From Lepidodermella squamata (lineage: Eukaryota; Animalia; Gastrotricha), in NCBI GenBank assembly GCA_047495785.1, contig JBLDXI010000025.1:1798001-1862000 (forward strand): a stretch of DNA of 64,000 nt, written 5' to 3'. This document shows positions 330 to 51,500 of the stretch, piece by piece. Both the position numbers and the translations under genes were made by a program. How positions within the stretch are numbered: position 1 is the stretch's first letter; the number at the start of each line of letters is the position of its first letter. The notes below the pieces were generated by a model that was not told where the DNA came from, made no database searches, and saw only the letters and a program-made list of their open reading frames with translations.

Positions 330-3300
330 GGCTCCGATGCAGTCTGCGACAATTGCGACAATCGTGGTCACTTGGCTCCTGCCTGCCGTCAACCGCGAAA
401 GCCGAAATCGGAGCGAAACCGCCGTCGACCTGAACATTTCGCTGGTATGACCGAAGGCGCCGCTTTCGTCGCCGGCGAATCTTTCGACTACGTCTGCGAT
501 AACTTGGCTCTCGTTGCTGGCTCGCCCACGAAGAACGACGTCTGGATTGCCGACTCGGGATGCAGTGACATGATGTCCCCCGACCTTGGTTCAATGCGCA
601 ACGTTGTTCTGCTCAGCCGTCCTTTCCGCATCAAGCTTGCTGACGGCAAAATCGTGTTGGCAAAGCAAAAGGGCGACGTCGATGTCCTGTTCAAATTCCA
701 AGATCGCTCCGAAAAAGCAACAATCTACGATGTTTTACACGTACCCGACCTCGTTGCTAATTTGTTTAGTATTCGCAGGATGACAGCACTCGGTCTCGGG
801 GCAATCTACCTTGGTGACGATGTCGAGTTCTTCGACCCAAGCACTAAGTCGACAGTCGCTACTGGCAAGTCGCACGGCTCGATGTACCTGATGAACATGG
901 CCACGGTGCCTCAAGGTTCGGCCTTCGTCGCCGCACCCGCCGAGCTGTGGCATCTCCGCGCTGCACATGTCAACTACGACGCTGTCTCGAAGTTGCCCAA
1001 GATCACCCAAGGATGCACCGTCACTGGTTCTGCACGCCCTTTTTGCGAGCCTTGTGCGCTCGGCAAGGGTCACCGTCTGCCTCACCCTGAAGTGAAACAC
1101 GAACGTGCCGACAAGCCGCTCGACCTCGTTCACTCCGATTTGGCCGGCCCAATCGAGGTGCCAACCATCAATGGTGCCAGATACGCCATGACTTTCGTCG
1201 ATGACAGCACTCGCATGACGCATGTTTACTTTTTGAAAACCAAAGATGAGGCTTTTAACGCTTTGAAAAGCTATGTCGAATTGGTAGAAAATCAGCACCG
1301 TCGAAGACTGGCTACGCTGAGAACGGATGGCGGTGGCGAGTACATTTCGGACGAGATGGCAAACTGGTTACGCGAACGTGGCATTCTCCATGAAATGACG
1401 GCCGCCTACAGTCCCCAGCAAAATGGTGTGGCCGAACGCATGTTCCGTACGCTTTTCGAAGGTTGCCGTACGATTCTGATCCATGCTGATGCTCCCGGCT
1501 GGCTTTGGGGCGAAGCACTCGCTTACGTCTGTTACTGTCGAAATCGTATGCCTAGTCGCTCTATTCGCCCTGGCAAAACTCCATTCGAATTGTGGTTTGG
1601 TCGTCGACCGGACATCTCGATGCTACGTGTTTTCGGCTGTCGCGCTTTCGGTCTCATTCCCGAGAAGGATCGTCACAAGCTCGACCCGAAGTCGAAACTC
1701 TACCGCTTCGTCGGCATCTCCGACTGTCGAAAGGCCTACAAACTTCTCGACCCGTCGTCCAACAGGATCTTCTACCGGTACGACGTCACTTTCAACGAAG
1801 CTTCGTGCAGCTTTCCGCCCGAGCCTCGCCCTGCCGGTGTCAATGGTGATGTGCCGATTCCCGCCGCACCCGCCCCGGCCATTCTTCAACGACCTGTTCG
1901 AACCGTGAAAGTCCCCGAACACCTCAAGGACTACGTCTGCGAAACGCTGCTGGACAAAGTGGGTAAACCCCCGCTTGTCCCCGTTCCTACCGTCGTTCCT
2001 ACCGTCGTTCCTACCGTCGTTCCTAGTAGTGCAGGTAAACCCCTGCCTACTGCCGACACTACGCTCGTTTCAACTTCGCCTGATCAATCTTGCTCGAACA
2101 ACGTGGGTAAACCCCCAGTTGCCGAAAATGGTGGGAGCCGTTTGGCCGATCCGGTCGCCCCTGACCCGCCCGCTCCAGCCATTCAAACTGTTGCGAAGAA
2201 AATTCCGAGGGACATCAAGAACGTCATCAACAACGCAATGACCTCGTCCCGAACCCGTTTTGGTAAGGTCGATCTAGCAATGGTCTACGCTCTGGCTACT
2301 GCCGTTCTCTCCGATTCGTCTGACGAACCAGCCACCTATCGTGAAGCCATGGAGTCTGAAGACGCTACGGGCTGGTCCGAAGCCTGCAAGATTGAGTTCA
2401 CGGCACACTCCAGCAACAAGTCGTGGATCATTGCCTCCTTGCCAGAACACGTCAAAGCAATCAATTCCGGTTGGGTCTTCAAGCGGAAGATTGGCGCCAA
2501 TGGTGAGCTCGATCGCCTAAAAGCTCGTATCGTCGCCAAAGGCTGCTCTCAACGACCCGGCGAGTATGGTGACACCTACGCGCCCGTTGTCTCGGCTACC
2601 AGTCTTCGTGCCGTCATTGCCTACGCCGCTGCAAATGGTTACTATCTGCACCAAATGGACGTCGTGGCTGCCTTTCTACATGGTGTTCTTCGCGAAACCG
2701 TGTACATGAAGCCCCCGCCTGGTATGACCGTTCCGCCCGGTAAGGTTTTGTTGCTCAAAAAGTCGATTTATGGGCTCAAGCAAAGCGGCCGCTGTTGGTA
2801 TGATACCCTTACCTCTTTTCTCAAATCAATTGGTTTCAAACAAAGCGAAGCTGATCCTTGTGTCTTTTCGAAGGATGGTTTGATTGTACTCATCTACGTC
2901 GATGACATGCTTCTAGCTGGTCGCTCACTCGAAGAAATCGCGTCCCTCAAGCGCCAACTGTCGTCGAAGTTCCAGATGAAGGATTGTGGCGAAGCCAAGT
3001 TCTTGCTCGGTCTGCACATCGAAATCTCTGGCAAATCAATCAAGGTTCACCAGAAGAGCTACATCGACAAGTTGGTCAAGCGTTTTCGCGTCGAAAAAGC
3101 CGCACCCGTTTCTACGCCAATCGATTCGAATACGGTTATCTGCGCTGATAACGGCTCCAAGCGGCTGGATGACAATCTGCTCTACCAGCAAATCATCGGA
3201 AGTCTGCTCTATGCTTCAATCCGCTCTCGTCCCGACATCGCATTCGCGGTGGGAGTTCTTGCCCGCTATTCGTCTGTCCCGACGGTCGCTCACTTGACGG

Positions 3301-3836
3301 CTGCAAGGCGAATCCTCGTCTACCTTCGCGATACGTCGACGCATGGTCTTCTCTACCAACGCCACCACGTAGGTAAACCCCTGCTGGTTGGCTACACCGA
3401 CGCCGACAAAAGTGGCTGCCCCGACACGCGGAAGTCGACTGGTGGCTATGTCTTTCTTTTCAACGCTTCACCGATCAGTTGGCTCTCGAAGCTTCAGTCC
3501 TGTGTGGCTTTGTCCACTTTCGAGTCCGAGTACGTGGCTCTGTCGGAGTGCTGTCGCGAAGCCATCTGGCTCCAACTGTTCTTCAAGTCGATCAACGTGC
3601 AAGTCAAGCCTACTACCTTGTACTGTGACAACCAAGCCGCCATCGCCCACCTCGACGCGCCAGCTATCAAGGCGTCCAAGCACATCGAGGTGCGCTACCA
3701 CTACACCCGCGACAAGGTGTTGGACGGCTCAGTCAACGTGCTGTGGTGCTCCACCGACGCGAACCTCGCTGACCAATTCACCAAGCTGTTGGCCAAAGAA
3801 AAATTCACATGCCTCGCTTCAAAAATCATTCAGTGA
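327..3836 (+). CDS. pol: 5'-truncated gag-pol: CCHC zinc knuckle, aspartic protease, GAG-pre-integrase, DDE integrase, RT (RVT_2 type), RNase H
   Basis: The frame opens after TAG at 324-326 with FGSDAV-CDNCDNRGHLAPAC (CX2CX4HX4C). It continues through WIADSGCS (protease), WHLRAAH..CEPC, VHSDLAGP / RTDGGGEY / NGVAER (integrase), LKARIVAKG, KSIYGLKQSGRCW, YVDDML (RT), and GYTDAD / STFESEYVA / YCDNQAA / NLADQFTK (RNase H). No internal stops. Confidence 0.96.
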   Translation, partial: FGSDAVCDNCDNRGHLAPACRQPRKPKSERNRRRPEHFAGMTEGAAFVAGESFDYVCDNLALVAGSPTKNDVWIADSGCSDMMSPDLGSMRNVVLLSRPFRIKLADGKIVLAKQKGDVDVLFKFQDRSEKATIYDVLHVPDLVANLFSIRRMTALGLGAIYLGDDVEFFDPSTKSTVATGKSHGSMYLMNMATVPQGSAFVAAPAELWHLRAAHVNYDAVSKLPKITQGCTVTGSARPFCEPCALGKGHRLPHPEVKHERADKPLDLVHSDLAGPIEVPTINGARYAMTFVDDSTRMTHVYFLKTKDEAFNALKSYVELVENQHRRRLATLRTDGGGEYISDEMANWLRERGILHEMTAAYSPQQNGVAERMFRTLFEGCRTILIHADAPGWLWGEALAYVCYCRNRMPSRSIRPGKTPFELWFGRRPDISMLRVFGCRAFGLIPEKDRHKLDPKSKLYRFVGISDCRKAYKLLDPSSNRIFYRYDVTFNEASCSFPPEPRPAGVNGDVPIPAAPAPAILQRPVRTVKVPEHLKDYVCETLLDKVGKPPLVPVPTVVPTVVPTVVPSSAGKPLPTADTTLVSTSPDQSCSNNVGKPPVAENGGSRLADPVAPDPPAPAIQTVAKKIPRDIKNVINNAMTSSRTRFGKVDLAMVYALATAVLSDSSDEPATYREAMESEDATGWSEACKIEFTAHSSNKSWIIASLPEHVKAINSGWVFKRKIGANGELDRLKARIVAKGCSQRPGEYGDTYAPVVSATSLRAVIAYAAANGYYLHQMDVVAAFLHGVLRETVYMKPPPGMTVPPGKVLLLKKSIYGLKQSGRCWYDTLTSFLKSIGFKQSEADPCVFSKDGLIVLIYVDDMLLAGRSLEEIASLKRQLSSKFQMKDCGEAKFLLGLHIEISGKSIKVHQKSYIDKLVKRFRVEKAAPVSTPIDSNTVICADNGSKRLDDNLLYQQIIGSLLYASIRSRPDIAFAVGVLARYSSVPTVAHLTAARRILVYLRDTSTHGLLYQRHHVGKPLLVGYTDADKSGCPDTRKSTGGYVFLFNASPISWLSKLQSCVALSTFESEYVALSECCREAIWLQLFFKSINVQVKPTTLYCDNQAAIAHLDAPAIKASKHIEVRYHYTRDKVLDGSVNVLWCSTDANLADQFTKLLAKEKFTCLASKIIQ
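1982..2024 (+). repeat. 12-bp in-frame tandem repeat (about 3.5 copies, PTVV) in the integrase-RT linker
   Basis: Repeated CGTTCCTACCGT. Confidence 0.85.
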
Positions 3837-6049: not shown

Positions 6050-8025
6050 ATGCATTTGCATCTCCACATTTTAGCAATTTTACTGTGGGTCGAGGCGACC
6101 TTTGAAAGAGGCCGACCAGCCCAGCGAGCTACAACAACAGCGAATTTCGACGATGATTTATTCGGACCACCGACCCCGCAATACATTCTGGGAAATGAGA
6201 AAACAAAACACCCTGTAGCCTCTCGGTTAAGTGGTAAATTAACGACTACAGCTAATTTTGACGAGGAGCCAACAACAACAAGGATACCAACAACTAAATC
6301 CAAGCAGAAATCAACCACGTCGAAGCGAACGACCAGGGTGACTAAAACAACTCGTTCGACTACGACAACGATAAAAACTACCGAGACAACTACAGAGCAG
6401 GAAATCGAGGAGCAAATTACTGTTGAAGACGAGTATGAACCCGGCAGTGAGTCTTATTCTGATGAAGATTCTTTGACGTCGTTGATGGCTCGATTGACCG
6501 AACAAGGCTACGACGCGAAATTTAGACCGTGGTACCACGGTAAAATCGGCCGAATTTTTGAAAAATTCCGAAAATTTCTGTTTTTATTAGGAAAACCTTT
6601 GGAAATTCGGTGTTCATTATTTTTCTCCAGTATAAGCTCAATATCGGAGAAAATGATGGATTTTACGACTGATTTCTATTTTCGCCAATCGTGGTTCGAC
6701 TACCGCCTCGCTTGGGACACAACGGAGAAGGATGTTCCGATAATTATACCGGGGGAGGACGTTGATTTTCTATGGAAACCTACCAGCTTCTTCCCGAACG
6801 CTAAATTCGGCGAAATTCATTATGTAACGCGGCGAAATGCTGACCTTCACATTTTGCCGAACGGCCACGTGACTGAAGGTTGCCGACTGACTTTAACTGC
6901 GACTTGTCCGATGGTAAATTTCACTGAAATTTTGCGATTTTTTTAAATTTTCGTTTGATTAAGGATTTTCGAAAATTCCCAATGGATGAGCAAGAGTGTT
7001 CGTTATTAATTGAACCTTTTTCACTGCCCGTCAATGACGCAATCTATCGATGGGACACCACTCCGAGATACTCGCGTAAGAAGGAGTACCATCGCGGTGG
7101 TTTCGACGAAGAGGAAGCTCACGTCGCCCTAGTAAACTCGGAGGGTGCGCACATGATAGTCGAACGGCAGGCGCATCTCACGAAATTGACGCACTTCTCA
7201 ATTCGCGGTATTCACATGTTTGAAGAATACGCAATTCGGCATGATGATGGGCTGAATTACACGCGGCTGCGAATCAGCATCGAATTCCGCCGCAATCTTG
7301 GCTACTACCTTATTCAGCTGTATTTGCCCGCCAATCTTCTGGTTATGATATCTTTCCTCTCGTTTTGGCTGCCGCGAGACTCAAGTTTGTCTATTTTAAA
7401 TTCATAAATTTGAAAAATTTAGCAAATTATGATAAAATTCAGGATTTGATTTTCAAATTTTGAAATAGATTTTAAAATATTTAAAATATTTAATTTAATT
7501 TTTAATTTTGTAGGTCCTTCGCGTGTTACTTTGGGTGCCACGATCACCCTGACGATGACAATAGCCCTCGCGTTCCAGGAACAAGCCGGTTTGCCAAAAG
7601 TTTCCTACATCAAAGCCGTCGATCTCTACTTTCTATTCTGCTTCGGCCTCGTTTTTCTCAGCCTCGTCGAATTCGCCGTAGTTACGTGGTTTCTTAAACG
7701 CTCTTTCACTCAGAGGTTGAAACAACCCCATCCGCCCTCATCGCTTGGTGATTCAAAATTTGTCAGCCCGCCTCTGTCGCCAACGTCAGGATTAAGGCGA
7801 AGGCCTATTAGCAAGTACAATAGAAAGAAGGAAAATCGAGCTGCTGTCAGTCAGTTTACAGACTGCCGCTACCAGATGAGCGGAAGTGATGAACAAATTA
7901 AGGCGGCTGGTGTGATCAACAACAAGGCGGCTTTTATCGATTGCGTATCACGCTTTTTATTTCCGCTTGTTTACCTAGTATTCAATATTGTTTATTGGTG
8001 GTATTACACTCGACCTGGTCACTGA
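6050..8025 (+). CDS. Cys-loop ligand-gated ion channel subunit, anion-channel (GABA/Gly/GluCl-like) branch; exons 6050-6539, 6591-6913, 6964-7384, 7514-8025
   Basis: Signal peptide; GYDAKFRP; FRQSWFDYRLAW; LWKPTSFFPNAK; Cys-loop CPMDFRKFPMDEQEC (CX13C) across intron 2; M1 GYYLIQLYLPA..SFLSFWL; M2 SPSRVTLGATITLTMT; LPKVSYIKAVDLY; M4 IDCVSRFLFP..FNIVYW. Introns are GT-AG, and AATAAA follows the stop. Confidence 0.95.
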
Positions 8026-12015: not shown

Positions 12016-12516
12016 ATGAGGCCAGAACTCATCGCCGTCACTTCTTTGGCTTTTATTTTCGCTTTGGTTCCCTCGAAGGGATGCGCTGATGACAATCCAA
12101 CTGCTGAATATCCAACATCCAGCGAATATGCAAAGGAGCGGGCTAATAAATGGGCGAATCTCAAGCATCATTGCATCCGACAAGCTGCTCTCAGCCCTTC
12201 AAGCCAGAGAGCGATGGAAAATCCTTCCATTGCTCGGCTCTCACGTAGCCTTCGGTCGTTTTACTCAGCCAATGAGTTGGAGAAGCAATCTCTGGCGTTG
12301 TGCGAAACGTGCTATGGAGAGGTTTGAGCTATTTTAAAAGTAGTCGGCCGAACTTTTCGCCCAATTCTCTCACAGGATGTCGCAATGAGATGTATCTGCA
12401 GAGCTGCGATGGCAGATCCAGTTTGCAGGTTGGCAATGGGAATGACCGACTGTCCACTCATCACCGCTTTCGATTTTCCCATTCTTCATCATATGAGTAT
12501 GAAACAGATTAGATGA
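12016..12516 (+). CDS. Secreted Cys-rich peptide, paralog A; exons 12016-12321, 12376-12516
   Basis: Signal peptide; KWANLKHHC..RLSRSLRSFYSANELEKQSLALCETCYGE|DVAMRCICRAAMADPVCRLAMGMTDCP; homologous to B-D with the same phase-0 intron position. Confidence 0.9.
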
Positions 12517-13324
12517 TGAAAATTGCAACCTTTCACCAAATAATTTATCATTATAGCGATATTAGCTGAACATATTCCTTCTATGGTTTTGCGGGGTGCT
12601 GGTAGAGCAAGACTGGGTCGATAGACGCCGGACCAAGTGCGATACGGCATAATAGTTTAATTGCTGAATAAAATAAAGATATAGAGCTGAAAAATTGCTC
12701 AAATTAGCCAGCACTATCCAGCATTGATAGAAATTGGTTTGCTGATTGTTTAGCATGCATAACGGACAATTCACTCCAGGCAATTCACTTCTTTCGTGTC
12801 GTCGAAGAAATCACGCATCAGGAAAAGTCCTACAATACACTGAGTGTAGCATGCGAATGCTTTATGGAGTTCTAATATGAAACCTAATGATACAGCTGGA
12901 TTACGGTACAAAATATAATGGTGAGATGTGTGAGAGCCAAGCTGTACATGACACTAATGTAATCAGAATTTCGCTCTTCAGCGCTCTTCCACGAGTGAAC
13001 GATTTCTTATCCCCAACCACTTCATCGCCTAACACCTTATTAAATAGGTCCATTTCCACCTGAAAGGGCTAGACCGTACCGCCTGGACCTTTCACATTTG
13101 AACGGGATCTTTTGACCTGTCAAATTTCATCAAGGTCTTACTCATATTTTCGATTAATCATATAGATATTATAAACGCATGCACCTCATGAACCTTTGAC
13201 TGATGATACCGAGTCGAGTAGCGCCGATGTAGGAAGTAACCAAAAATACGTTCTCTTTTAATGAGCTATTCATAAAAATAAAGAGCACCCCATTTCACAA
13301 CAAGACAATGAGACTAGAATGGGA

Positions 13325-13827
13325 TCAGCGGCGGCCGAATTTAAAGTTACGGATGTAACGGCGTGTCAGCACGGGGAAAACGTCAGCAATGGCCTCGGGA
13401 CAGGAAGCTGTTGCAAAGGCGACTCTGCAAGCAATATCAACTGAAGCAGAACGGCACACACATGAAAAGGCGTCATCCTGAAATTCAAACTTGGTAATAC
13501 AATCCGATATCACTGGATGCTAATGGGACATACGTTTGAGTAACAAGCATTGCAAACTTGAGCCATTTTGTGGTTGAGATCATTTGCCGAGTAATGGGCT
13601 CTAAGGCTACGAGACAGTCGCTTGAGCTCCGCGGTTTGGGAATCGCTCTCCTTCCATGAATTGCTGTTCAGTTTAGAGATGTTCGCTTGCTTGATGCAGT
13701 AAGCTTTCAGATTTTGCCATTTGGTTTCAGCTCCAACAATTTCAAAGAAAGACCCATGCAGGTCCACTTCTGACTTTGAGCCGCTGATCGATAGGCTCAC
13801 CAAGCTGAACAATGTAAATAGAAACAT
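13325..13827 (-). CDS. Secreted Cys-rich peptide, paralog B; exons 13827-13534, 13477-13325
   Basis: KWQNLKAYC..RLSRSLRAHYSANDLNHKMAQVCNACYSN|DDAFSCVCRSASVDIACRVAFATASCP..RRYIRNFKFGRR*. Confidence 0.9.
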
Positions 13828-16206
13828 TCCTACAAAGAAATAAATATCTTAGACCGGAAGAAACTCTAGGTAGATTTAATTTTTTGATACAAGAAAACAT
13901 GGCTTGAGCATAAAGGATCAACTAAAGTTCAAATCGTCTTGACGCAGCAGTTGAGTCGAACGGCTGCTTCGATTAAAGCTAATGGGATTTTGCAATGATA
14001 GAATAAAATGACTATATAACACCTGGCGTTTTATTTAAACTAACAGCCGTGGATTAAATCACGCTTCATATAAGACTGAGATAGGAAAAACAAGGGCCTA
14101 AAGTTGTGTCATGACAGGTTGTCAAGTAGGTTATTGATCAACGGCTTCGCGAACAATTTCTGACATTCGCAGAATCGAAAACGAGCCAGCTGTGAATGAA
14201 GGGTGCGTTACGGCTTCTGAGAAAAACGTTAATTAATTGATGCCCAAGTTTTCCAGCCAGATATTGAACTTTTTCACCAGACGAAATCGAAGAAGGCGTA
14301 ATTAGCAAAATTGTCGTAGATGTGCGAATTTGCGATTTGATTTTTACCATACGCAATAAACTTTTGAAAATATGAAAATATGAAACGAAGATTTTGCTGT
14401 TTTCGTTCAATTACTTATCTCAGAAGATGGGGATTGCTCTCTGAAGTAATTATAGGGAGTGCACGGACCACGGACTGTCCAGGAGAAATTTGAAGTGAGA
14501 GAGTAATCGCGTATAAGCACACTTTTGAGTGACCCTTCACGCAAAATTGCCGTCAAGTGAAGAAATAGAAGCTAAGAGACGTCTAATAATCGCCCATCTC
14601 TATTACTAGCCCACTTTAACATTCTACTTGGGGGTTATAAATTCAGTGTCGGGTTGCTACTGGAACAAAACATCGGATAGTCGGAGATAACAACAAATGA
14701 ACAATAAATGGAAAAGAACGATACGCTTGAATCTCCTCGGTCAAATAGCCATAAAATGAGAGGCAACAATTAAGTAGTTTAAAACCGTTTAAAAAAGCGG
14801 GTGTATTGGCCGTAGCATGAACATGATTTTTAACGGATCTAATTAAATTATTCGGCATTTAAGCAAGATAAGCAAGCACTGACACATCAATGCTCGTTGC
14901 TCTGCTACTCTTAGAAAGTTGTGGTTGTTTGATACCTTAACGCGGGGTAGCTTTGGACAACTTCGGCTTTGAAGGTGAATAGATTCGCGACGCCGAACTA
15001 TAACATACTATTATAACATACTAACTATAACACATGACTTGACCCAAGACATTTCCCGTCCTTCAAGATTTCACTTCACGGAAAAAGTGTCACTGAGAAC
15101 TGAAAGCTCAACCGACAATTTCATAATACGCAAATTGCTGTCCGTGCATTTACCCGCTAATTGCCTGCCAATATTCAAGAGTGTTATAAAACGTATAACT
15201 AAAAAAATTGACGACATTTGCGGAAAATAGTTTGCTGCAGGAATATTAATTATTCAACCTTATATACAAGTACTTTGCTGTGCGGAAACTATGTTTGTTC
15301 ACAAAACTGTCCCAACTTCGCATAGAGTCACGCTTACAACTGTAGCTGTGACTTGTGGCTGAACTATAATTCAATTATTACTGTCCACACCGGTAGGCGG
15401 TGTTTAATTGAGCTGGCAGATACTGGAATATCATAACCTTCTAAATCAAGGCTGCGTTTTTATCTTCGAAAACATTGCTTTCTCCGAATTACCTCTCGCG
15501 TTACGGTACTCGTTTTAATCTTATTAGAGTGTTTGGATTTGAACACAAAGCGAGAGAGCAAATTGAATGTAGCTTATAGGCAAATTGTATCACTAATTTG
15601 AACTTCATGCGCCGAGCCTTCGAATATTTTATTGTTACCTCAAGCGCAACGCAGGGGGTGCTCGCGACAATTAATCAATTTGAACATGAAGCTGATTGCA
15701 GCTGGCGTTCTGTCATAATTTGATTTTGGCCATGAGCGACGGAAGATTAAGCGAATTACGCGCAGAGATATGATGATGCATATCTCGTCTCCAATCTCAG
15801 CTATAAGTTTGCACTAATGCTGGGGACGTAACATCAAAGCTGCTCAAATTCTATGCTTGGTGTGTTAATAATGGTGCAGTTTTAATTGAGCTGATTCTTA
15901 TATATTCTCGGATGATGCAAAGTCGCAGCCCCAGTTTGGGACATCATTTTGTGTATGAACGGTTGACAACAAATTCCTCAAGCACGCTGCAAAATTTGAA
16001 AGTCCTGAGAAAGTCCACAAAACAGTCAAGACGGCGTTCTTATAGGGCTCGAATGAATGCGCGCTCGAGAAGGCTGTAATAATTTTGAATTGGTGCGCAT
16101 CGAGCTAAAGCAATAGCTAAAATGACTAAAGCAATAAAGCAATACCTATGCACTAATTTTAGCAAATCTGAGACCTGCCAAGCGATTTCGGCCCATTTAG
16201 TCATTT

Positions 16207-16251
16207 GAAAAGAAAAGAAAAGAAAAGAAAAGAAAAGAAAAGAAAAGAAAA
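16207..16251. repeat. (GAAAA)n pentanucleotide microsatellite
   Basis: About 9 direct copies. Confidence 0.9.
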
Positions 16252-17419
16252 CTGACGCATCAACGTTGTTGCACAACACCTCATTTTCGAATGACTGAAG
16301 ACAGAGATAGGACCGAAATCGCTTGGTGGGTCTCATCTGTAGCGAGAATCTGACATCCGCCAGTCTCAAACGGTATCTGAAACTTATCAGATGATTGGCT
16401 ACTCCGCATTCAATTATTACAGCAGGGGTCCAAAGTTAGAGAAATCATGTGCCCAATGTTATAATTAACAGTTCTAATACCACGTGATCGGCTTATGGTA
16501 GCTGAAAATGAAGCATGCTGGAAACAAGCAAGCGTTTGATATACCTAAAGACGCCGAATCAAGCCATTGACTTTACAGGAAATATAGGAAATTTCATTGG
16601 AAGTTGTGTCAGACTGTCATTCATATCAGTGACAAAGTGTAAATTTGCGTAGGCAGTCTGTTCTGCAGCAAGACAATTGTCATGCCCGCGGGTAGAAAGT
16701 GGCGGGGGTTCAGTTAGTAGTTGTGGATATTAGTAGATATTAGTCTATTTGCCTTATATAATGTTATAGCTTTTAAATAAGACAGATACTTATACAGTGA
16801 AGACGATTTGTCGTCTTCTATGGGGCGGACGAAAATGTAGGCGGAAAATCCGAATAGACGGATAATCCGGGTCGATTTTTATGGAATTTGATGCCGCGGG
16901 AAAAATGAAGTTTTTCAATATCTCAACTTTTGCATATCCAGATTTCCCGCCAGACGGAAAATATATGGATGACAAATTGGGGTTTTACTGCAGTCTGGTA
17001 GCCCGGTATTTCCCCCCCAAGTTGAAGCTATAGGGATTATTTCATGCGTTTCGCTGAGCGAAATTGTTCACCGGATGAATTCGAAAATCTTAGATAAAAT
17101 TCACCAATTGGTATAAAATTAACATGGTTTTCTCAAATGCGCTGAGCAGATTGGCGACTCCGAGTATTATACCCCAGCCTTAACATGACAAGTTTACTAT
17201 ATGAGGAGAGCGAGGATATAGGGGACACATGTGCTGAGGTGCTCCATTCATCCTCATTACTGCCTTGCTAAGGGGCGGGAATAGGTATCAAACAGAATGA
17301 ATCATTATTATTTCACAGATGTCAACTGCTAATTTTTATTAAACGTATAATATTTAAGATTTCGATGAACATGTAATATCAGACTCATTAATACCATATC
17401 CCGCGCAATTATGAGGGAT

Positions 17420-17882
17420 TTATAATAATTTTTTGTCCAGCATCGGAAAATAGCTGTTGGCTAATTCTGGACAGTCTGTGGCCGTCATAGCAATCCGGCA
17501 AGTTGCGTCGAGTAAATTTGAACGACATAGGGATAGCTTCGCAATTTTGTCCGTGCCCTGCATGGAAACGTTAGGTTATAGCAAATGTTCTGTTGTGCGC
17601 AAGCATCGGACTTACCTTGTAGCATGACTTGCAGAGTTCCAGCGAGCGTTTACCAAGGGAATGCGCTTCGTAGTTCGCTCGTAAGCTCCTCATGAAGCGG
17701 TAATGCAAAATGCGATTTGCTGTCGTCTCAGAATCGCTGGAGTGATCGGTCCGCAATGATATAGATATTGCAGCTCGCTTGACACAATATGACTTGAGGT
17801 CGTTCCATTTCTCTCTCATCTCCTCCCCTCTCGAGAGAAAAACCATAGCTAGGATGAGAAAGATGACTCTGATAAGGAGCAT
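17420..17882 (-). CDS. Secreted Cys-rich peptide, paralog C; exons 17882-17616, 17557-17420
   Basis: KWNDLKSYC..RFMRSLRANYEAHSLGKRSLELCKSCYK|GTDKIAKLSLCRSNLLDATCRIAMTATDCPELANSYFPML. Confidence 0.9.
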
Positions 17883-18384
17883 GCTCGGACTTTCGCAGTA
17901 AAGGTTGCGGGTAATAAAAAATAAGATGCTGGAATACTGTTGCGGTTCACATTTTCGAAAGGCGCTCCTTAAATAGGATCCCTTGTTATTCGGAATCCCG
18001 TCGTATTCTAAACTCTATAGCCCAAATTGAAAATTGGATAGCGCAAGGAATTCATCCACTCGTCAGGATACGCTACAACCGGTGACTTATTAGCACTTTT
18101 TGTCATGACATCTTGTCAGACGGCTTTGACAACATGTTAAAATTCCACAGAAATAGGATAGCTCAGTGCAAAAATCGTGTGCTATTTACTTTACAGATTG
18201 TGCGGTTTGCATTGCTTGAGGAATGTAACTTTATTCTTATAATGAAACGTATCATCATCATTGAGGCATTTTTTAATTCCGATTTAACTCCGATGCTTTC
18301 TTGAACGCTTTGGACGCGCGTCTAGTTGCGTAATATGGGCGTCCGTAGTAGCGTAATCGCGCCATGACGTTTCGATTTTTTTCA

Positions 18385-18680
18385 CTAGCCATAGTTTAAA
18401 TAAAGTTCGGGCGCGTATACGGCCACCACAGCACTTTGGATCCTGAGGCCCCTAAAAGTAATCGCAAGTGCTTCCAATCCGAAGTTACTACTGAAGACAT
18501 AAGTGCGCTCGGATACTTTATTACTTGCCGTGCCTGAACCCAGTAACTTCTGCTTATCACTCGCCTGTACTCCCGCTCGAGAGTGCGAGCCACGCAAAAC
18601 TAAGCAATAGAAACTGCAGGCGTCTGAGTGCTCGCGGGCGTCCGAAGTACCACTGATAGCGCAAAGCATCGTTTCATTCA
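18385..18680 (-). pseudogene. Probable decayed non-LTR retrotransposon APE endonuclease fragment
   Basis: CAISGT (compare consensus IAISET) and LEALAITFRGLRIQSAVVAVYAP (compare E.L.I...I.V..VYAP). Confidence 0.45.
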
Positions 18681-20800
18681 ACTGTTCCGAAGGTGTAGAG
18701 TCGCCGTCCGAGTCGTTATTGGTGGAGGTCTCATGAAGCCTCATGAAAGATGAACTTATGTCCGTTTCATGAAGTGAACATTGAATTGCATTGTATCACT
18801 TAACCAAGAGGAAATAAAAAAGATGTTCGGCAAAGACGGCAAAGCTCTTTAAAATATAACCTCCATCAGATATTCAGGAAATATTGGATGAAGAAGAATT
18901 AAAAGCGGGCGCAGCTAAAGCTGACAGCTGACAGCCGTTTTGGGGCAATTTTAATAATGTGTAATCGAAAACAAATTTGGCTAGCAACCAAAGTCCCAGC
19001 CTGCATAATCATTACTAGCGCCAGCTAGTACGTAGGACGTCTGCGACACTTGGAACTCGACGTCCTTCTACAAGAAAATTGACTTAATCTCACTTTTATA
19101 TATTTTAGAAGTTTATTGGTTCGATTATATCCCAAATTTGACATCAGACTGATTTGTGGAGTCATGCAATTAATTAAGATGATTGAAAAGCGAAGATGGA
19201 AATAACATCATGGACACATTATAATATTGTCAGGACGAGTATGAGACTCTAAGTCTCAAGAGTATTTTTTATTAGTGGAAGCCTTTAAACTGTAAACTCA
19301 AGTTGGGCGGATTTGCAGACCACCAACTCGGTGGGCCGACAGCCTGAAAAGGAGCTTTCTGACAATCTACTTATTTCAAACTTCAAACCCACGTCAGGTT
19401 AGTAAAAATGTTAATGAATCCATAAAACGTGGTAGACCCTGTGAGTCTGACTCCTGCTCGAACATTGGTCAATGAGCTGATCTTTAAATGACTGAAATTG
19501 CAGGAAACAAGCGGCAGGAATGACAAATGTTAGGTAATTCAATAGAAAATTGAATTCTTAGACCACGGCAGCCTGTTCGCAGGCTGTTCACCACCGCATT
19601 GTTGGATCCCAAGATTGATCGCTTGCGGTCAGCCGTCCGTTTAACCCGCAAAGTTAGGCTTTCTTATAACACCATAGCTTAGATGTTAAATACAATTTTT
19701 CAACTTGATAATTTCGTTCGTTATCCATACAAGCCCACAAGCGCTTCTCCAAAACGCGAATATTTATTTATGATCATTTGTTGATTTTACTCATACATTA
19801 CTCGATGAGTTCTGTTTTGAACCATTTCGCTTCACGTTGTAAGCTGAGCAAATTACAACAAAAGCAATTACAATTCTGATTCGCCAGCAAGTCGTAACTA
19901 TAACTCCGGCTAGAGTGCAACCTGGATTGTCGTTGGATTTCCATTTGTCTTCAAGTCCGAACCAATGAACAATGAGCAAAGTACTGAGGCAAAGGGGGCT
20001 ACGATGCATCCCTCCCTTCCCCCACCCTTTTCCCCGAACTAGAGAGTAAGAAAACCGAAATAACCACGTGGCACATGGGGACTCCGTTAAAGACGGGGCC
20101 CCAACCGCGTAGAAGATGGAAATTTTACCCAAAGGGGGATACAGGCAAAGGTTCCCCTTACATCGCTCAAGTTTCGGCAGGGGCCAGGAAAAAACATAAG
20201 GGTGTTTAGGTGTGCCTGTGATTAGGCTTCGAGTCCCCGGGGCTCGAAGCAGAAACAACCCCCTCCGCCGCTTCCCGCCCCCGTCCCTCCACGCCATCTT
20301 CGACACTGGGCCCCAGTTTTCCCCATAATCCTCCTAGCTAGAGCGTATATGCTGATAATGGATACGCACTCCTTAACAATCGAAAGTCGAAAAGCCGCAC
20401 GATTTGCGAACTCTTGGTTACGGCTAAAATTGACCAATCAGAATTCAACAAGAAAATTTGCTGAACTTGAACGTGAGGCGCAACGGTTCGAAACAGAATG
20501 CCTATATAAGTTATATAAGTTGAATAAACAAAATGTTCAACAAAACCTCAACGTATAATGACTATGAGCATTATAGTCTGGATATGCAGTGTCAAAGTCC
20601 AACTACTTGTTGCTGGGTCTGTCGTGGTAGTGGGGCTGGTGGGGTTGGTGGGTGAGATTTTTTTTCATACTAAATTAATCAATCGAAAGAATCGCGTGCT
20701 GGCTAGTGCTATAGACGCTATCATATCGACCATCAAAGCAACAAGTAGTTGGACTTTGACTCCGCATAGCTGGCCTAAGATGAGAGTACATTTTCAACAA

Positions 20801-21277
20801 TCAAATTGCTGCATTTAAATGAAGTACAAGATCAGGACAGTCAGACATAATAAGAGCAACTCTGCAAGGGCCCTCCAGAGTTTCAGATTTGCATAGACAT
20901 AAATTGGCTAACGCAGAAGTTTCTTCAGGCTATGGGAAAAAAACTGATAAACGATGAACTCCAGGATTATCAGAGCTTACATTGTAGCATTTTTCACAAA
21001 GATCCCGGCTCATCTTATAAAGAGCATTCGCTTCGAAATGAGCACGTAGGCTTTTCGAAAACCTGGAGTAGACGAAGCTGTGTAGTAGGGTTGCTACGTT
21101 AGCTTCACTTGTTCGTGACTTGTGGCTCGATCCAGGCTTGGGATGCTTGAGACAATATTGCTTCATAATCCCCCAGTGCGCTGTAGAGATGCGGCTGAAC
21201 AGCGTAGCCTCTATCCTGAACTCTGAGGTAAAGATTATAAATAATAATAACAAAGCCACGACTTTCAGCTTCTCCAT
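20801..21277 (-). CDS. Secreted Cys-rich peptide, paralog D; exons 21277-20981, 20929-20801
   Basis: MEKLKVVALLLL signal; HWGIMKQYC..RFSKSLRAHFEANALYKMSRDLCEKCYN|PEETSALANLCLCKSETLEGPCRVALIMSDCP. Confidence 0.9.
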
Positions 21278-23897: not shown

Positions 23898-25484
23898 TTA
23901 AAATGGAGCATCAACACTATCGCCACCCGTTCCTTCGATTTGTACCATAAGCGCAGGCCGGCGCATGTCGATTTGGAACAAGTCGGGCGTTTGCATGACG
24001 CTTGAAACATCAGCGGGTAGGCCTGATGTCCTCAAGAGAGCCAATAAAGTTCCATGATCGGCTTTTACCGCTATGGTTGGCATTACGGGTACCAGGGTGC
24101 TGTAGGGTACGACACAGTCGGATTGCATGGTCTGGTATGTTGGCAGATGAATGCCGATATACTGACCGGGATTGACATTAACAACACGCCTTGAAAAAAA
24201 ATGAAAATTTTTAACATTTCATAATTTATCAATTTGAATTTTGAAATTGAAATTTAATTTAAAGTTTAAGTTTAATTTATTCTAATGGATTTCAATTTTT
24301 CAAATTGCTTACGGAATTTTGTATTCCTGCCAACCAGCGGCGCCATTTGTCTGAACCTGAACCAGGTCAACCAGGGTCGGTTTGACATCGGACATGTTCA
24401 CCGAAATGGCACCGGTTTTACGGTCGACGCTCATCGAATTGAGGCCGTCGATGCTCCAAACGCCGACGTAGAACATTTTATTAGCCTTGGGCGTTTTATC
24501 GATAAACTTCACGCTCTTCATCACACCTTGGCATTGAATCTATTTTGAGAATCAAATTTTTAAATTATTATGAAAAAATTTGGTAATGCGAACCTGAAGA
24601 CCAAGGTAGATTTGGAGATAAGACGAAACAAGGGTGTAATTATCAGCCCCGAATCTCGAATCAGCACATCGGCCAACGAGGCAGGTATCGCAGACCTGCG
24701 TTGCATCGGGTGCAGCCGCCGGGCTTTGAATGCCAGCGATGGGTTGGCAAAACGACGTGCACTCGGCGTTGGTCGAAAATCGGTTGTTATTGCCACCTGC
24801 GCCGGTCCACGTGAAAAGTTGGCAGGCATTGATTCTCTTGTTGTACCAATACCGGGTCATCATTCCTGGGCCATTTCCAGCGTCGGAATCAAGGTAGCAT
24901 GAAGGCGGAAGGTTGCCAATGGTTGTTGTGGTTGCTAAAATAATACAACAAATATTTAAAAAAATTTAATTTTAAATTATTCAATTTTTTCAATTTCAGG
25001 ATTTTTAAATTTTTTCTTACGTGTTGCCTGGGTTGTTGCACCGCTTCGAACGCAGTTGTTGACGCAGTCATTCATCGAGGTGAATCTGTTGTCATTTCCC
25101 TGGCATCCACCCCAGCCGAATTGTTCGCAATTGGCCGAGTAGATGTTGTAGTAAAAGCGCGGAATCAACGCGCGACACGGTCCGGTGTCTTTTGGCAGGA
25201 AGCAATAATCAGGCGCTTTGAAGTCGAGATTTCGAGCCGCCACAACCGGTGCCGCTGTCGTTGTTGTTGTTTTCGAGGTAGACCGAGTTCGCCGGCTAGT
25301 TGTAGTCGGATCGGGTGTAGTGTCGTCCAGTGAAGCTGGCAAATCGCTGATATCGAGTAAAGATTGACCATGCACGGCATAAAAAGCCACCTTAAAACCG
25401 GAAATAAAATTTAAATTTAAAATCCGGTAAAATTAGCGAAATTACCGCAGCAACGAAAATTGACGCCAAAACTGTAGATCCCAT
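23898..25484 (-). CDS. Secreted protein with two Kunitz domains plus the same unnamed domain; exons 25484-25446, 25390-25021, 24934-24594, 24539-24313, 24189-23898
   Basis: Kunitz 1 CFLPKDTGPCRALIPRFYY..CEQFGWGGCQGNDNRF..CVNNC. Kunitz 2 CYLDSDAGNGPGMMTRYWY..CQLFTWTGAGGNNNRF..CTSFC. Then CDTCLVGRC..IQCQG..AGWQEY..GQYIGIHLP. Confidence 0.9.
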
Positions 25485-45592: not shown

Positions 45593-48500
45593 CTTCTATT
45601 GTGTTGTGTGATGAAGAAGCTGGCGCTCATCCGACTTGCCCAAACTGGTTGTCCCTGTCCTTCTTGCAAACGCGCGATTTTTGCCCACCTGGCGGTCCGC
45701 TTGGCTGTGTCCGCGATCCGACAACTTGCGGCGCAGATAAACCCGTCTGCTGCACGCCAGACTGGTTCGTTTATTTTTCAAAAAATCCCCGAATTACGAA
45801 CTTTATTTTTTGAAAATTAAATACAGAAAAAATGTTTTCAAAAATATTTTTCAGTTTTTTCTGATTAATACAATTATTTTTTCTAGGTGTCCAACCTATG
45901 GAATTTGTACCGATGCACAGGGTTTCTGCCGCGATGTTAACGACCATTTAGTGTCGCATGGCCAGCAGTACCCGGTCGATTCGAATGATCCGTGTTCAAT
46001 GTGCACGTGCATCAACGGCCAGCCGGAGAATTGTCAGAGTTTGAAATGTGCCGAACCGCCGCTGTGTTCCGGCCAGAATCAGGTCCGCGGCCGGTGCTGC
46101 GAGTTCGAATGCCCGGTTGACATCTACGGAGATCGTAAGTTCTAATTTCACGAAATAATTCACATGAATTTGGCTCAATTTTTTATTCATTCATAATTTA
46201 TTAGGATTAGGAATTTTCATTGATTTTGATTTTTTTTGCTATTTAGCTATCAAAGGAATTCGCTTAGTTGGTGGAAATTCGCCCCGAGAAGGCCGAGTCG
46301 AATTGCTTCTCAATAACACCTGGGGCACAGTTTGTGATGATAATTTCAACGAGAAAGCCGCTCGGGTCGTTTGTCGTATGTTGGGATACGAGTAAGCCCT
46401 TTGATTTTGCCAATTCTAATTTATTCCTATTTTTTCCCGATTTTTAGTGCTCCATACTACACAGCAATTGTCAGCAAATTCGGCCCTGGTTCAGATTCAA
46501 TCCACTTCCGAGACATCACCTGTTTCGGCAATGAACAATCAATTTGGTGGTGCATGCGAGGCGTTCGATCCTGCACGGTAAGATATCATTAAAACTCCCT
46601 AATTTTTTCTAAGCCCAGGAAAAACCGTAAAATTTATTTTATATTCACCCGGCAACATTTTGAATATAAAAAAGTTCCGCTCGACACCTTACGTTCGCTG
46701 CTTAACACCTGAAGAGGAAGCTACAACTCCGACGCCTGAGGATGATAATCTCGCTGAAGATTTATTAGCGACTGAAGAGCCGTCAAACGCTGAAATTTAC
46801 GAGGCTAAATACAACAATAACCTTGACTCGAATGAGCGAATTTCGAACGATTTAAATGAGCCTAAATCGAATAGCCGCCGAATTACTTCGATTCAATCGC
46901 GGCAGCAACAACGTAGGGCTCAGGTTACGATTCGAGACGATGATGTCGAGCCAGAACCGCCGAAAAGATCGAATCAAGCTGCTCAACTGCCGCCTGCTAG
47001 GCCATGTCAGTTAAAAAAAATTGAGCAAAAAATGTGAACGCGTGCTCCAAGAGTGTTTTTTGCAACGAGTTTTTCCACGTGCACCGGGCTTGCAATGGAA
47101 TAATCGAAAATTTGAAAAAAATTATTGAAGGTTTAGAATTGAACTTTTGGAAAATTGACGTTTTTAATTGAATTTTTCGATTTTTTTCGGAATTTTCTGC
47201 ACTTTTTGGCTTAAATCTGCAAACTCATCGCTTTTTTGTTTTTATTTTTGTGACTTCAACTCGAACTGGTGAATATTCCCCCGTTTTGTGAAATGGCACG
47301 TTTGGCAAATGATGGCATGTTGATGATGAGCAGCACTTCGAGGACGTTGGCGTGTCGTGTCTCGTCACGGGGCAAGTTCCGACGGCGGCGCACGCCGACG
47401 ACGACGGGCCGACACAGCCGACACGCGTCACCGCACGCCCGACGAATGGCGCGCCCAGCACGGCGGCGACGACGCGGTGGACGCGCGCCGACCCGGCCAC
47501 TACGTCTTCGTGTAAATACGCAAGCTTTTTTCAATTTCACGAGTTTTTTAGATATGTACATCAGAGCAAATTTTGTCACATTTTTGCTTATTAGGACCAA
47601 CTATAGAATGGTTGCAAGAGCTGAGACGTTGAAATATTCAAAATAATTCAAGTTTTCCTGCGAAATGGAAAATTTCTTCAAAAGAGAGGGAATTTTGTCC
47701 AGAATTTATGAATATTTTTGCGTATTTCGGCTCATTTTTGGCATCTGAATTGTTTTTGTAATGGAAATGTCAAATTTTCAAATATGTTTAGGCGTGAAAT
47801 CGTCGACTATTCGATTGGTTGGCGGCCGAACTGATTGGATGGGTCGAGTTGAAGTCTTCCATAACCGCCAGTGGGGCTCGGTTTGCGACGATTATTGGGG
47901 CGTTAACAATGCCGAAGTCGTGTGCCGATCGCTTTGTTTCGAGTAAGTTACACTATTTTACTTGAAGAAAACTTGATAGCCGAGTTATAAGTTCATATTT
48001 ATAACGGATTTTTTCTACAATTTTTATCATTTCAAATAGCGCGTAAAATTTAAATTGCAAGCAATTTCGGGGAATATTTCGACATAACCTTTAAACTTGA
48101 AAAAACCAAATTTTACAAATTAAAAAAATTTAATTGAAATTGAAACTGAACAATTTAACAACTTTTGGATTTTGATAATTTTAATCTCGAAATAATTAAT
48201 TTTCTTCGAAATTTTAAAATTTTGTCTGAAATTTCAAAAATTTGAATTTTCTATTAATTTCAGTCCTCACTACGCCGCTGTTTACCAAGACAGTTTAATT
48301 CCGCCCGGAAACGGCACAATTTGGCTCGACGACGTGCGATGCAACGGCGACGAAGCCGTGCTCGAACGGTGCCCGCACGCGCCGTGGGGCTCAAACAACT
48401 GCCAACACGAGGAAGACGTCGCAATCGCATGCCAACCGCTAGAAAATCTCATGTCAACAACAATTTCAATTGACGAAGGCAAATGGCCGGTGGTTCGGTG

Positions 48501-51500
48501 CCGGCAAGACTCAGTCTCCGCCTGCTTCGACCTGTCCGATGTTGGGAATGACGCGAGATTCGTCACACTAACCGCCGAGCCGACAAATTCGAGCTGCCAA
48601 AACGCGGGCCGAGTGAACGCGTTTGCGTTTGAAAGCGCCGATATCGCCGCTAATTCGTTCAACGAATTCATAAATACGACGTTTAAATGCATTCGAGTGG
48701 CTCGAAGCGGCTGTGGTACGATGATGAACAAGAATCAGACGCATTTCATTTACACGAATACGATAACGCGGACGAACACGGCGCCGTCGAGCGGCGGCAC
48801 GTTCCGCTTTGTTATCAAATGCTCGGCGCAGCGGTACTACTCGCCGTTGACTGCGTCGTATAAAACGTACCTGCCGGAGGTTGTCATCGAGAAGAGCTAT
48901 CTGTACCAGGTTTCCATGTGCTTCTGCAACCCGATCGATCGACCCACCGATCCGTGTGTCGCTCAGGATCCGGTTCAGGTCACCCGCGGATCCCTTCTAC
49001 AGGCTTGCATCATTTTAACGTAAGTAACCGGATTTGTTAATTTTGTAAAATTTCAGAAGCTGAATTGGAAAAATTATATTTTTTGCAGAGCAAAATGCGG
49101 CGGCAAATTAAATTGAAAATTGAAAATTAAAATTTACAAAATTTACAAAAATTTGAATAATGGAACAGGAGACTCGAACCGCAAATTGAGCATGAATTTT
49201 TCACTATTTGAAGGCCACTGCCTCACTTTTTGAATTTTCTAAGCGCAGAATTTCGGCATTAGAATTTTAATCTTATTGTGTAGTTCATGGGCGCAAAACA
49301 CCGAATTTTTCAATTTCTATTGGAGCCTTTTCGAGCCGATGGAGAAACGATTGGCGTTCATTATCCGAAACTGATTGTTTTAGTGGATTTAGGTGATTTT
49401 AACGCTCCAAGTCGGTCATAATTGTAGCTGAAGCCCATGTCGATTGAACCAGTCAGATATCAGACTGAAAATACGAGGTATAGAGTAGAGTCCCCTGTTT
49501 GGAGAATGTAGGCTAGTGGGAACTGTTCCCCCACAAACGAAGCCATGGATCGTATAATTTGGGCACACATCGTTGGGCAAGGTTTAAAGGTTCCATCCGA
49601 AAGGTACTAATTCCCGCCTAAAGCCAATACATTGGCGTATGCATTGGCAAGGTACATCGTGGTAGTCAGGATTATTGTTCGCTGGGGGCATCACGGCCGG
49701 TGTAGACGCCGTTGAGGTAGAGCGATTCGCCATTTCGCCATTCGCCATTCAATTGTTGAAAGGGAAGTCATTCAAGTTTATTTCTGCTAAAACTTTTGGA
49801 TTTTTCGGCATTTTTGAGCTCAATTCCGGGCCCCCTTAGTTTCGCGCAGGCTATGACAAAGAACAACATACACATCGACGGGTCATCGGCACCTGAGTCG
49901 TAGATAGCCATTGACTCACCATTATGATCAAGAAGAAGTAATCGAGAAGTTCAATGGTTACATTTTCTTACACAAAACAATCGCTTGTGACCTCGGTAAT
50001 TTTGAAGCAGGCAGTTATCAATTGTGATGGCCCGTCCCTCCTTGCGCACGAGGCCTTACTGATTTCCGAAAACCACAACAGCAATCATTTTCTTATCATC
50101 TCGGAGGAAAAATCGGTCAGGTGTTGAACTGGGTCAAATCGATCGGAGGCAGTGTTTTCGGGATCTTCGACAACAGCGCACGAGCGCATCGTTGAAGAGC
50201 TAAATCAAGGCTCAAAAGAGATATCAAGCTAGAATGCTTAGAGAGACATTGCAGCTTTTGAGGTACTTGAAATCAGGCAGCTCAGGAGCGCAGCTGTTGA
50301 GGAGCAGGTTCCAGCCTAGGGTGCGGCATCAGAGTGGAATCTGGCTTTCGCCTTACACCTAGGACCTAGGGTCGAGTGAACACTTCAGGTAGTGTGTACC
50401 ATTTCTAGCTTTGCTGCTAGAAACGTAATCGTACCTATTGATCTCATAGACGCTTATAAGGTTTTGAAGCTCAAGGTGCCGCCAGACAACAAAGGCGCTC
50501 TCAGCCATTGCGACATGATAAGCGGGAGAGTCGATATGAATCATCAGGAAATCATTGCATTTAAAAAGTATTTCCGCATCAGTCCATTTTCATGATACAA
50601 GATGAGCGAGAGCTTCTAGCTGTAAAATACACGGGATCAGGGTTAACATCATGAGCCAGCAGCTGAATGGCTTTTCCAACAGAGAAATTTTCTTTCACTT
50701 CTTTCACAAATCAACCGACCGATCGCCGATGGGAAATGGATTCTCCGGACGATGGCATTGTGGGTGGTTGTCCTAAGGAGGCACTGGAGGGTTCAACCGA
50801 CAGCCCAATGGATGGGTCTTCTGACGAGACACTTTAGGACGTAGAGGCTGCCTTAAATATAATGGTTACCTTTCCCCAAATTGTGCTGATGTAGTCGCTT
50901 CTCCGCTGAGCGGCGAGTCTCTCCAATGTAGAATTTAGTCGACTTGCGTTGGGGGAAAACGGGATAAGTCACTCCGCGGTATATTCGGTTTGTCGAAGAG
51001 TTTGTTATTATTAACTTGGGTGCATTGATATCGCCAACAGCATTGCAGTCCACAGCGCTGTTCATTTGATTTGAGGCTTGCTGGGTTTTTTTTCAAAACA
51101 GCGTCAATGGCCTCTTTCGTAATGCGTCGGTCATGTCGCATCGTTGAAACGCATGGAAATTCATGACCTGCGTAATCTTTACCTCGCCAGACTGTTTACG
51201 GTTCCAAGGATTTTCGCCGGACAGCCGGTGAATCCCAAATTCTGATTCAGCCGATCGCAGGCTGTTCGCCTCGGGCCTGTAGCCGTGTGTGCATGGTAAT
51301 AGTACCGAGTTGGTGCTGGAACCGCGGCAGACGCGACCAGCGGAAGGCATAGCGAAAAGTATTCAAATGCTTATAAACCAGGCCGTGACGAGATTGAAAC
51401 CGGTCGGCCACCTTTGTATCCAACAATTTGGAGCCATGGTATAAGGAATGGAATTTAGAAGTTAGATGCGCTAGTTGACCTTAGCAAGGAAAAAAATCAC

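Follow-up and report, generated by a model that had tools for sequence, protein, structure and literature searches.

What kind of protein is encoded by a cluster of four small paralogous genes in the gastrotrich Lepidodermella squamata? The genes, here called A, B, C and D, form a cluster of about 9 kb at positions 12016-21277 of a 64,000-nucleotide stretch of genomic DNA (GenBank assembly GCA_047495785.1, contig JBLDXI010000025.1, positions 1,798,001 to 1,862,000; the window, to which coordinates refer unless a contig is named). A first-pass annotation, made from the sequence alone, had described them as four divergent members of an unnamed, expanded family of secreted peptides and had suggested that they carry a disulfide-rewired version of the CHH/ITP neuropeptide scaffold. 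Our data confirm the four paralogs, add a fifth, and establish that A and B are transcribed, spliced and under purifying selection. We regard it as solid that the genes make up a new family, with no relatives that could be detected, in a phylum that has received little study; kinship with CHH/ITP finds no support. The reading that we favour, with a probability of roughly 0.45, is that the genes form a lineage-restricted family whose products are secreted helical ligands, pinned by disulfides and of hormone or cytokine kind.

Structure of the gene family

The exons are listed below; complementary DNA (cDNA) evidence comes from a public sequencing run of 2015, here called X1, and model confidence is given as the predicted local distance difference test (pLDDT) score.

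12016..12321, plus strand: gene A, exon 1; putative signal peptide, predicted helix 1 with Cys1 and an extra N-terminal Cys, Ser-rich linker, predicted long helix 2 running into CETCY; from open reading frame (ORF), translation and cDNA joint 12321>12376 (GT..AG)
12376..12496, plus strand: gene A, exon 2; CxC, CR-x-A, CP and FP-x-L motif; both borders are cDNA joints
12557..12624, plus strand: gene A, exon 3; 22-codon tail closing in Leu-Gly-Arg-stop, an amidation-type end; from cDNA joint 12496>12557 (60 nt skipped, GT..AG)
13534..13827, minus strand: gene B, exon 1; putative signal peptide, predicted helix 1, linker, KR, predicted helix 2 running into CNACY; from cDNA contig 13562-13831 and joint 13534>13477
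13325..13477, minus strand: gene B, exon 2 with stop; closes in Phe-Gly-Arg-Arg-stop, an amidation-type end; cDNA contigs continue unspliced past the stop to 13237
17616..17882, minus strand: gene C, exon 1; the only paralog with exactly six Cys; from ORF, translation and AlphaFold2; no contig of cDNA run X1 here
17420..17557, minus strand: gene C, exon 2 with stop; from ORF and translation; AlphaFold2 predicts four short helices (pLDDT 60)
20981..21277, minus strand: gene D, exon 1; from ORF and translation; GTAAGC donor
20801..20929, minus strand: gene D, exon 2 with stop; acceptor a pyrimidine run followed by AG; intron of 51 nt

Gene A (plus strand) and gene B (minus strand) are convergent, and B, C and D follow one another in tandem on the minus strand. 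The four genes lie where the first-pass annotation had placed them, and all the motifs that it listed are present in the four genes. Exon 1 encodes a hydrophobic, signal-like N-terminus, a helix with the motif W-x2-[LM]K-x-[YH]C, a variable Ser-rich linker and the conserved run R-[LF]-x-[RK]-SLR ... [YF]xA[NH]xL-x7-CxxCY, and exon 2 encodes C[RK]-x7-CR-x-A-x5-CP, usually together with FP-x-L. The similarity among A to D is far beyond chance, since comparison of the exon 1 products of A and D by BLASTP gives an E value of 1e-9.

Profiles built from these four members and searched in six frames against the whole assembly (121.2 Mb in 151 contigs) found a fifth, more divergent gene, E, on the same contig about 114 kb past the window end (G000:C25:1975974-1976470; L010:1447-1943, minus strand). 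Its exon 2 was recovered genome-wide at E=7e-4 and its exon 1 aligned to the profile with an hhalign P value of 2.5e-4. Gene E is complete: a signal-like start is followed by Cys1 within the helix, KR and then LSLRLE, CDKCF, a phase-0 intron of 56 nt at the position and in the phase found in A to D, and LC...CRIS...CP...FPRL. It has eight Cys, namely an N-terminal CC and the six that are invariant, and two N-glycosylation-type sites in its tail. Beyond A to E the whole-assembly search found no further copies, and neither additional nor degenerate ones emerged when hidden Markov models were searched locally against the window plus about 40 kb of flanking sequence.

The first introns of all five genes are in phase 0, bounded by GT..AG and 51-58 nt long, and they lie one to three codons past CxxC[YF], upstream of the fourth invariant Cys. 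The six Cys shared by the five paralogs follow the pattern C-x41-52-C-x2-C-x10-14-C-x8-C-x8-C. A, B and D have an additional Cys within CxC, and A has an eighth near the N-terminus, so that B and D have seven each. Pairwise identity within the family is only 21-37%. The N-termini of all five proteins are hydrophobic, and the presumed mature proteins that would remain after removal of the signal peptide measure 115-142 amino acids and are mildly basic (isoelectric point 8.2-9.3). In the regions upstream of the five genes we found no 8- to 10-mer common to at least four of them.

Transcription, splicing and purifying selection

Run X1 carries about 9% of the sequence words of the stretch, and one of its loose ends bears the SMART cDNA oligonucleotide, which identifies it as cDNA. 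A second run, X2, is genomic and differs from the window by about 1%. The comparison with the reads covered 5,901 nt, which take in A, B and C. Two joints in X1, 12321>12376 (54 nt, GT..AG) and 13534>13477 (56 nt), coincide exactly with the introns predicted for A and B. A third, 12496>12557 (60 nt, GT..AG), reveals a second intron in A (12497-12556) that the first-pass annotation had not predicted; this joint adds a third coding exon to A, whose protein therefore ends in ...RARLGR. For gene A this corrects the two-exon structure proposed earlier. No X1 contig was found at gene C.

Genes A and B are under purifying selection. Their coding exons show 11 differences from X1 and X2 together, which come from other isolates; nine are synonymous and fall in the mature parts, where none is non-synonymous, and the only two non-synonymous differences (V8A and F13L) both lie in the putative signal peptide of A. 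Were about three in four random changes non-synonymous, finding none among nine would have a probability of about 1e-5. More differences are found in the introns and flanks of both genes than in their coding exons. The cDNA joints of A and B and the 9:0 ratio strengthen the proposal of an unnamed, expanded and secreted family with spliced transcripts.

Predicted fold and processing sites

AlphaFold2 was applied to the two exon products of C separately, exon 1 being represented by its mature part and modelled with a five-sequence alignment. The exon 1 model (mean pLDDT 72) shows a helix at residues 2-18, a low-confidence loop at 19-31 and a long helix at 32-70 that ends in CxxC; the exon 2 model consists of four short helices at low confidence (pLDDT 60). 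When the two halves were modelled as separate chains, as a stand-in for the full-length protein, the interaction prediction score from aligned errors (ipSAE) was 0.02 and the pLDDT of the partner fell below 50, an outcome that weighs neither for nor against a common fold. A Foldseek comparison of the exon 1 model with the PDB returned generic helical hairpins alone, at E>2. The models thus attribute helical propensity to C, and the family is probably all-helical with a disordered Ser-rich insert.

The first-pass annotation had also proposed that cleavage at an RxxR-like site would yield two disulfide-linked chains. In the model of C, the motif R-x-x-[RK]-SLR lies within the long helix, a location that favours a structural function over use as a site of cleavage, and a listing of basic sites found no dibasic or RxxR site anywhere in the D protein. 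Obligatory processing of this kind is therefore unlikely. A cut at the conserved Arg would release a C-terminal fragment of about 72-91 amino acids, nearer to the size of CHH, but such a cut is not supported in every member. At the other end of the proteins, A closes in Gly-Arg and B in Gly-Arg-Arg, on tails that are not homologous to each other, that of A being encoded on an exon of its own.

Search for relatives

No relative of the family was found in any of the collections searched. A Pfam hmmscan of the four exon 1 and four exon 2 products of A to D, with the halves scored apart, gave nothing meaningful at E<=10. D exon 1 found no match when 5.8 billion proteins were searched by word index, and an exhaustive HMMER search of 1.84 billion protein representatives with the five-member exon 1 profile returned none at E<=1e-3. 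Against PDB sequences both exon profiles produced chance rows alone (E>0.5), no family locus was found among metagenome contigs, and three queries of the ESM Atlas gave nothing usable, the best score (0.82, to C-type lectin clusters) lying in the range of noise. The family's own products are likewise absent from the searched libraries, in which gastrotrich proteins are evidently poorly represented, and relatives in allied animals may have been missed.

Comparison with the CHH/ITP/MIH superfamily

In CHH and MIH peptides, whose superfamily also takes in the latrodectins and HAND toxins, the six Cys are paired 1-5, 2-4 and 3-6. According to the first-pass annotation, A to D would be highly diverged members of the CHH/ITP/MIH superfamily in which one ancestral disulfide has been swapped for a new pair joining the N-terminal and C-terminal parts. 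There is a likeness at a general level: the proteins are apparently secreted, predicted to be all-helical and equipped with six conserved Cys that presumably form three disulfides; the small genes are interrupted by a single intron within the mature part, and as in some CHH lineages they are duplicated in tandem; and amidation-type Gly-basic ends, known from some CHH members, occur here in A and B. Closer resemblances are short ones, namely CxxC-Tyr-[N/K/S/G] at the C-terminal end of the long helix, as in CHH helix 2, a CxxC-x12-C arrangement in C and D, and C-x8-C with a hydrophobic helix after it.

The features that define the superfamily are nevertheless not matched. CHH peptides have six invariant Cys in three bridges, measure 72 to just over 80 residues and are known across Ecdysozoa (PMC7560641), and nearly all of their genes are interrupted in phase 2 within the codon that follows the one for the fourth Cys (PMC2841656). 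The mature proteins of the present family, by contrast, are about 1.5-2 times longer (115-142 amino acids) and contain a disordered Ser-rich insert by prediction, and their phase-0 intron falls between Cys3 and Cys4. Taking the CHH spacing as C-x15/16-C-x2-C-x12-C-x3-C-x8-C, from the first-pass annotation's numbering of the Cys as C7/C23/C26/C39/C43/C52, we find in common only CxxC, together with x12 in C, and in D if a non-invariant Cys is used; the first Cys of the family stands 41-52 residues ahead of CxxC, and the later intervals are x10-14, x8 and x8. The host also lies outside the range of a superfamily known only from Ecdysozoa, L. squamata being a spiralian, placed as sister to flatworms (PMC11660948).

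Profile searches point the same way. PF01147 (Crust_neurohorm), the search model named in the first-pass annotation, gave no row for any exon product at E<=10 with the two halves scored apart, and in a six-frame search of the whole genome the cluster drew no match and no locus exceeded the cut-off, so that no canonical CHH/ITP gene was detected. Rows below the threshold elsewhere in the genome (L012, L013) do not have the look of CHH exons. The family profiles found no CHH, MIH or HAND chain among PDB sequences. On these sequence comparisons the short resemblances are a lead and not evidence, and CHH kinship is unsupported rather than refuted; we consider it very improbable. If it were true, an extremely diverged CHH offshoot in a gastrotrich would push the origin of the superfamily back to the protostome ancestor or beyond and would indicate that its disulfide framework can be rewired.

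A possible mode of action and its rivals

In the model that we favour, each gene would be transcribed and its short phase-0 intron spliced out to yield a pre-protein with an N-terminal signal peptide, and the mildly basic mature protein of 115-142 amino acids would be secreted. It would fold into a small all-helical domain made up of helix 1 with Cys1, a variable, disordered Ser-rich loop, a long helix 2 running into CxxC, and after it between two and four short helices that bear three more Cys at 9-residue intervals; three disulfides among the six invariant Cys would hold this domain together. The Gly-Arg and Gly-Arg-Arg ends of A and B would be trimmed and converted to a C-terminal amide. 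In the regulated secretory pathway of animals, ends of this kind are what carboxypeptidases classically trim before amidation. The proteins would act as extracellular signalling ligands, whose paralogs diverged in surface residues. Secretion, disulfide bonding, amidation and ligand function are thus inferred, and three observations in particular support the ligand reading: the Gly-Arg(-Arg) ends are found on non-homologous tails of A and B, the mature parts are strictly selected, and the framework Cys are invariant while surface and linker vary.

Several points weigh against the ligand model. The domain and its disulfides are deduced from models of separate halves, of which the exon 2 model is weak (pLDDT 60), and the signal peptides were assigned by eye. 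Amidation-type ends occur in two of the five members, C, D and E having none. With seven Cys each, B and D have an odd number, and it is speculation that these two proteins might form covalent dimers. Expression evidence covers A and B and comes from one whole-animal cDNA run that carries no tissue information. The absence of relatives is weak evidence for true lineage restriction, because the searched libraries seem to lack proteins from gastrotrich transcriptomes. Finally, tandem, fast-diverging, basic, disulfide-rich secreted families are equally typical of defence or reproductive proteins.

This last point leads to the main alternative, in which the products are non-signalling secreted effectors, for example membrane-active antimicrobial or defence proteins or proteins associated with gland, cuticle or egg; their fold would be a stable helical scaffold, and the cluster would reflect arms-race or dosage duplication. 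The tandem arrangement of fast-diverging paralogs (21-37% identity), their mildly basic character, amphipathic-looking helices and presumed disulfides, the lack of processing sites in D, and an orphan look shared with many immune and reproductive families would all fit such effectors. The Gly-Arg(-Arg) ends of A and B rather suggest the regulated secretory pathway, although antimicrobial peptides are also amidated at times, and the within-species differences in both genes indicate strict purifying and not diversifying selection. Nor did the Pfam search give a match to saposin-like or other defence families: for SapB_1 and SapB_2 there was no row at E<=10 with either exon half. Saposin-like proteins (SAPLIP) and Aplysia attractin-type pheromones do resemble what is predicted for the family, as small secreted helical bundles with three disulfides and often with lineage-specific expansions, but its Cys pattern fits neither, the saposin pattern being C-x2-C ... 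C-x9/10-C ... C-x5-C. On balance we hold the effector alternative to be possible, though somewhat unlikely.

Another alternative treats the proteins as two-chain prohormones of insulin-like architecture, in which the Ser-rich linker would be cut out at the conserved Arg and the chain with Cys1 would remain disulfide-linked to the C-terminal chain. The order of parts is indeed reminiscent of insulin and relaxin, with a signal peptide, a helix containing Cys, a variable connector ending in a basic site and a Cys-rich helical part, and these hormones are often encoded in multigene clusters in invertebrates. An Arg is invariant at the start of R-[LF]-x-[RK]-SLR, B and E have Lys-Arg there, the linker varies and is disordered by prediction, and Cys1 would join both parts. 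The same Arg, however, lies inside the predicted long helix of C; A, C and D have no dibasic site there, D having neither a dibasic nor an RxxR site at any position; and no consistent site precedes the linker on its N-terminal side, which dibasic sites do not consistently flank. Insulin and relaxin carry a pair of Cys in their B chain, the motif CC-x3-C-x8-C in their A chain and flanking dibasic sites, whereas the present family has neither the B-chain Cys pair nor the CC-x3-C-x8-C motif, and its exon products gave no match to the Pfam insulin family at E<=10. We consider a two-chain prohormone improbable.

Genomic neighbourhood

Other features of the window and of the genome were recorded alongside the family and are given here as separate observations:

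372-3836, plus strand: long Copia-type retrotransposon polyprotein ORF with integrase and reverse-transcriptase motifs; G+C content 52-54%, above that of the rest of the window
6050-8025, plus strand: Cys-loop ligand-gated ion channel gene of at least three exons, with Neur_chan_LBD and Neur_chan_memb and a long Thr-rich low-complexity N-terminal extension
14725-14889, between B and C: low-depth cDNA contigs that join opposite strands, which may represent a small transcript or a cDNA artefact
16137-16333 and 16728-16936, between B and C: repeats, with several-fold higher depth in the genomic run and many loose ends
16199-16258: simple repeat skipped in the genomic run
24977-25390, minus strand: protein that looks secreted, with a single Kunitz/BPTI domain and a region rich in Thr
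48334-49023, plus strand: exon coding for the final part of an SRCR domain and, after it, a ZP-N domain

Outside the window, a tandem repeat of low complexity (period about 350-430 nt) at G000:C29:3416914-3417795 gave spurious sub-threshold matches to nematode SL1 RNA, and an Rfam SL1 search of the genome matched nothing but this repeat. Six-frame searches turned up neither nematode cuticle-collagen N domains nor arthropod R&R chitin-binding domains, a weak negative, since the controls could not give a signal.

Significance

The first gastrotrich genome dates only from 2024, and to our knowledge almost no peptide hormones or secreted effectors have been described from these animals. The present evidence leaves what is known of the origin of the CHH/ITP hormones unchanged. 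For a phylum about which little is known, the family itself provides a tangible candidate for a novel signalling or defence protein, and it occurs in a species that can be cultured.

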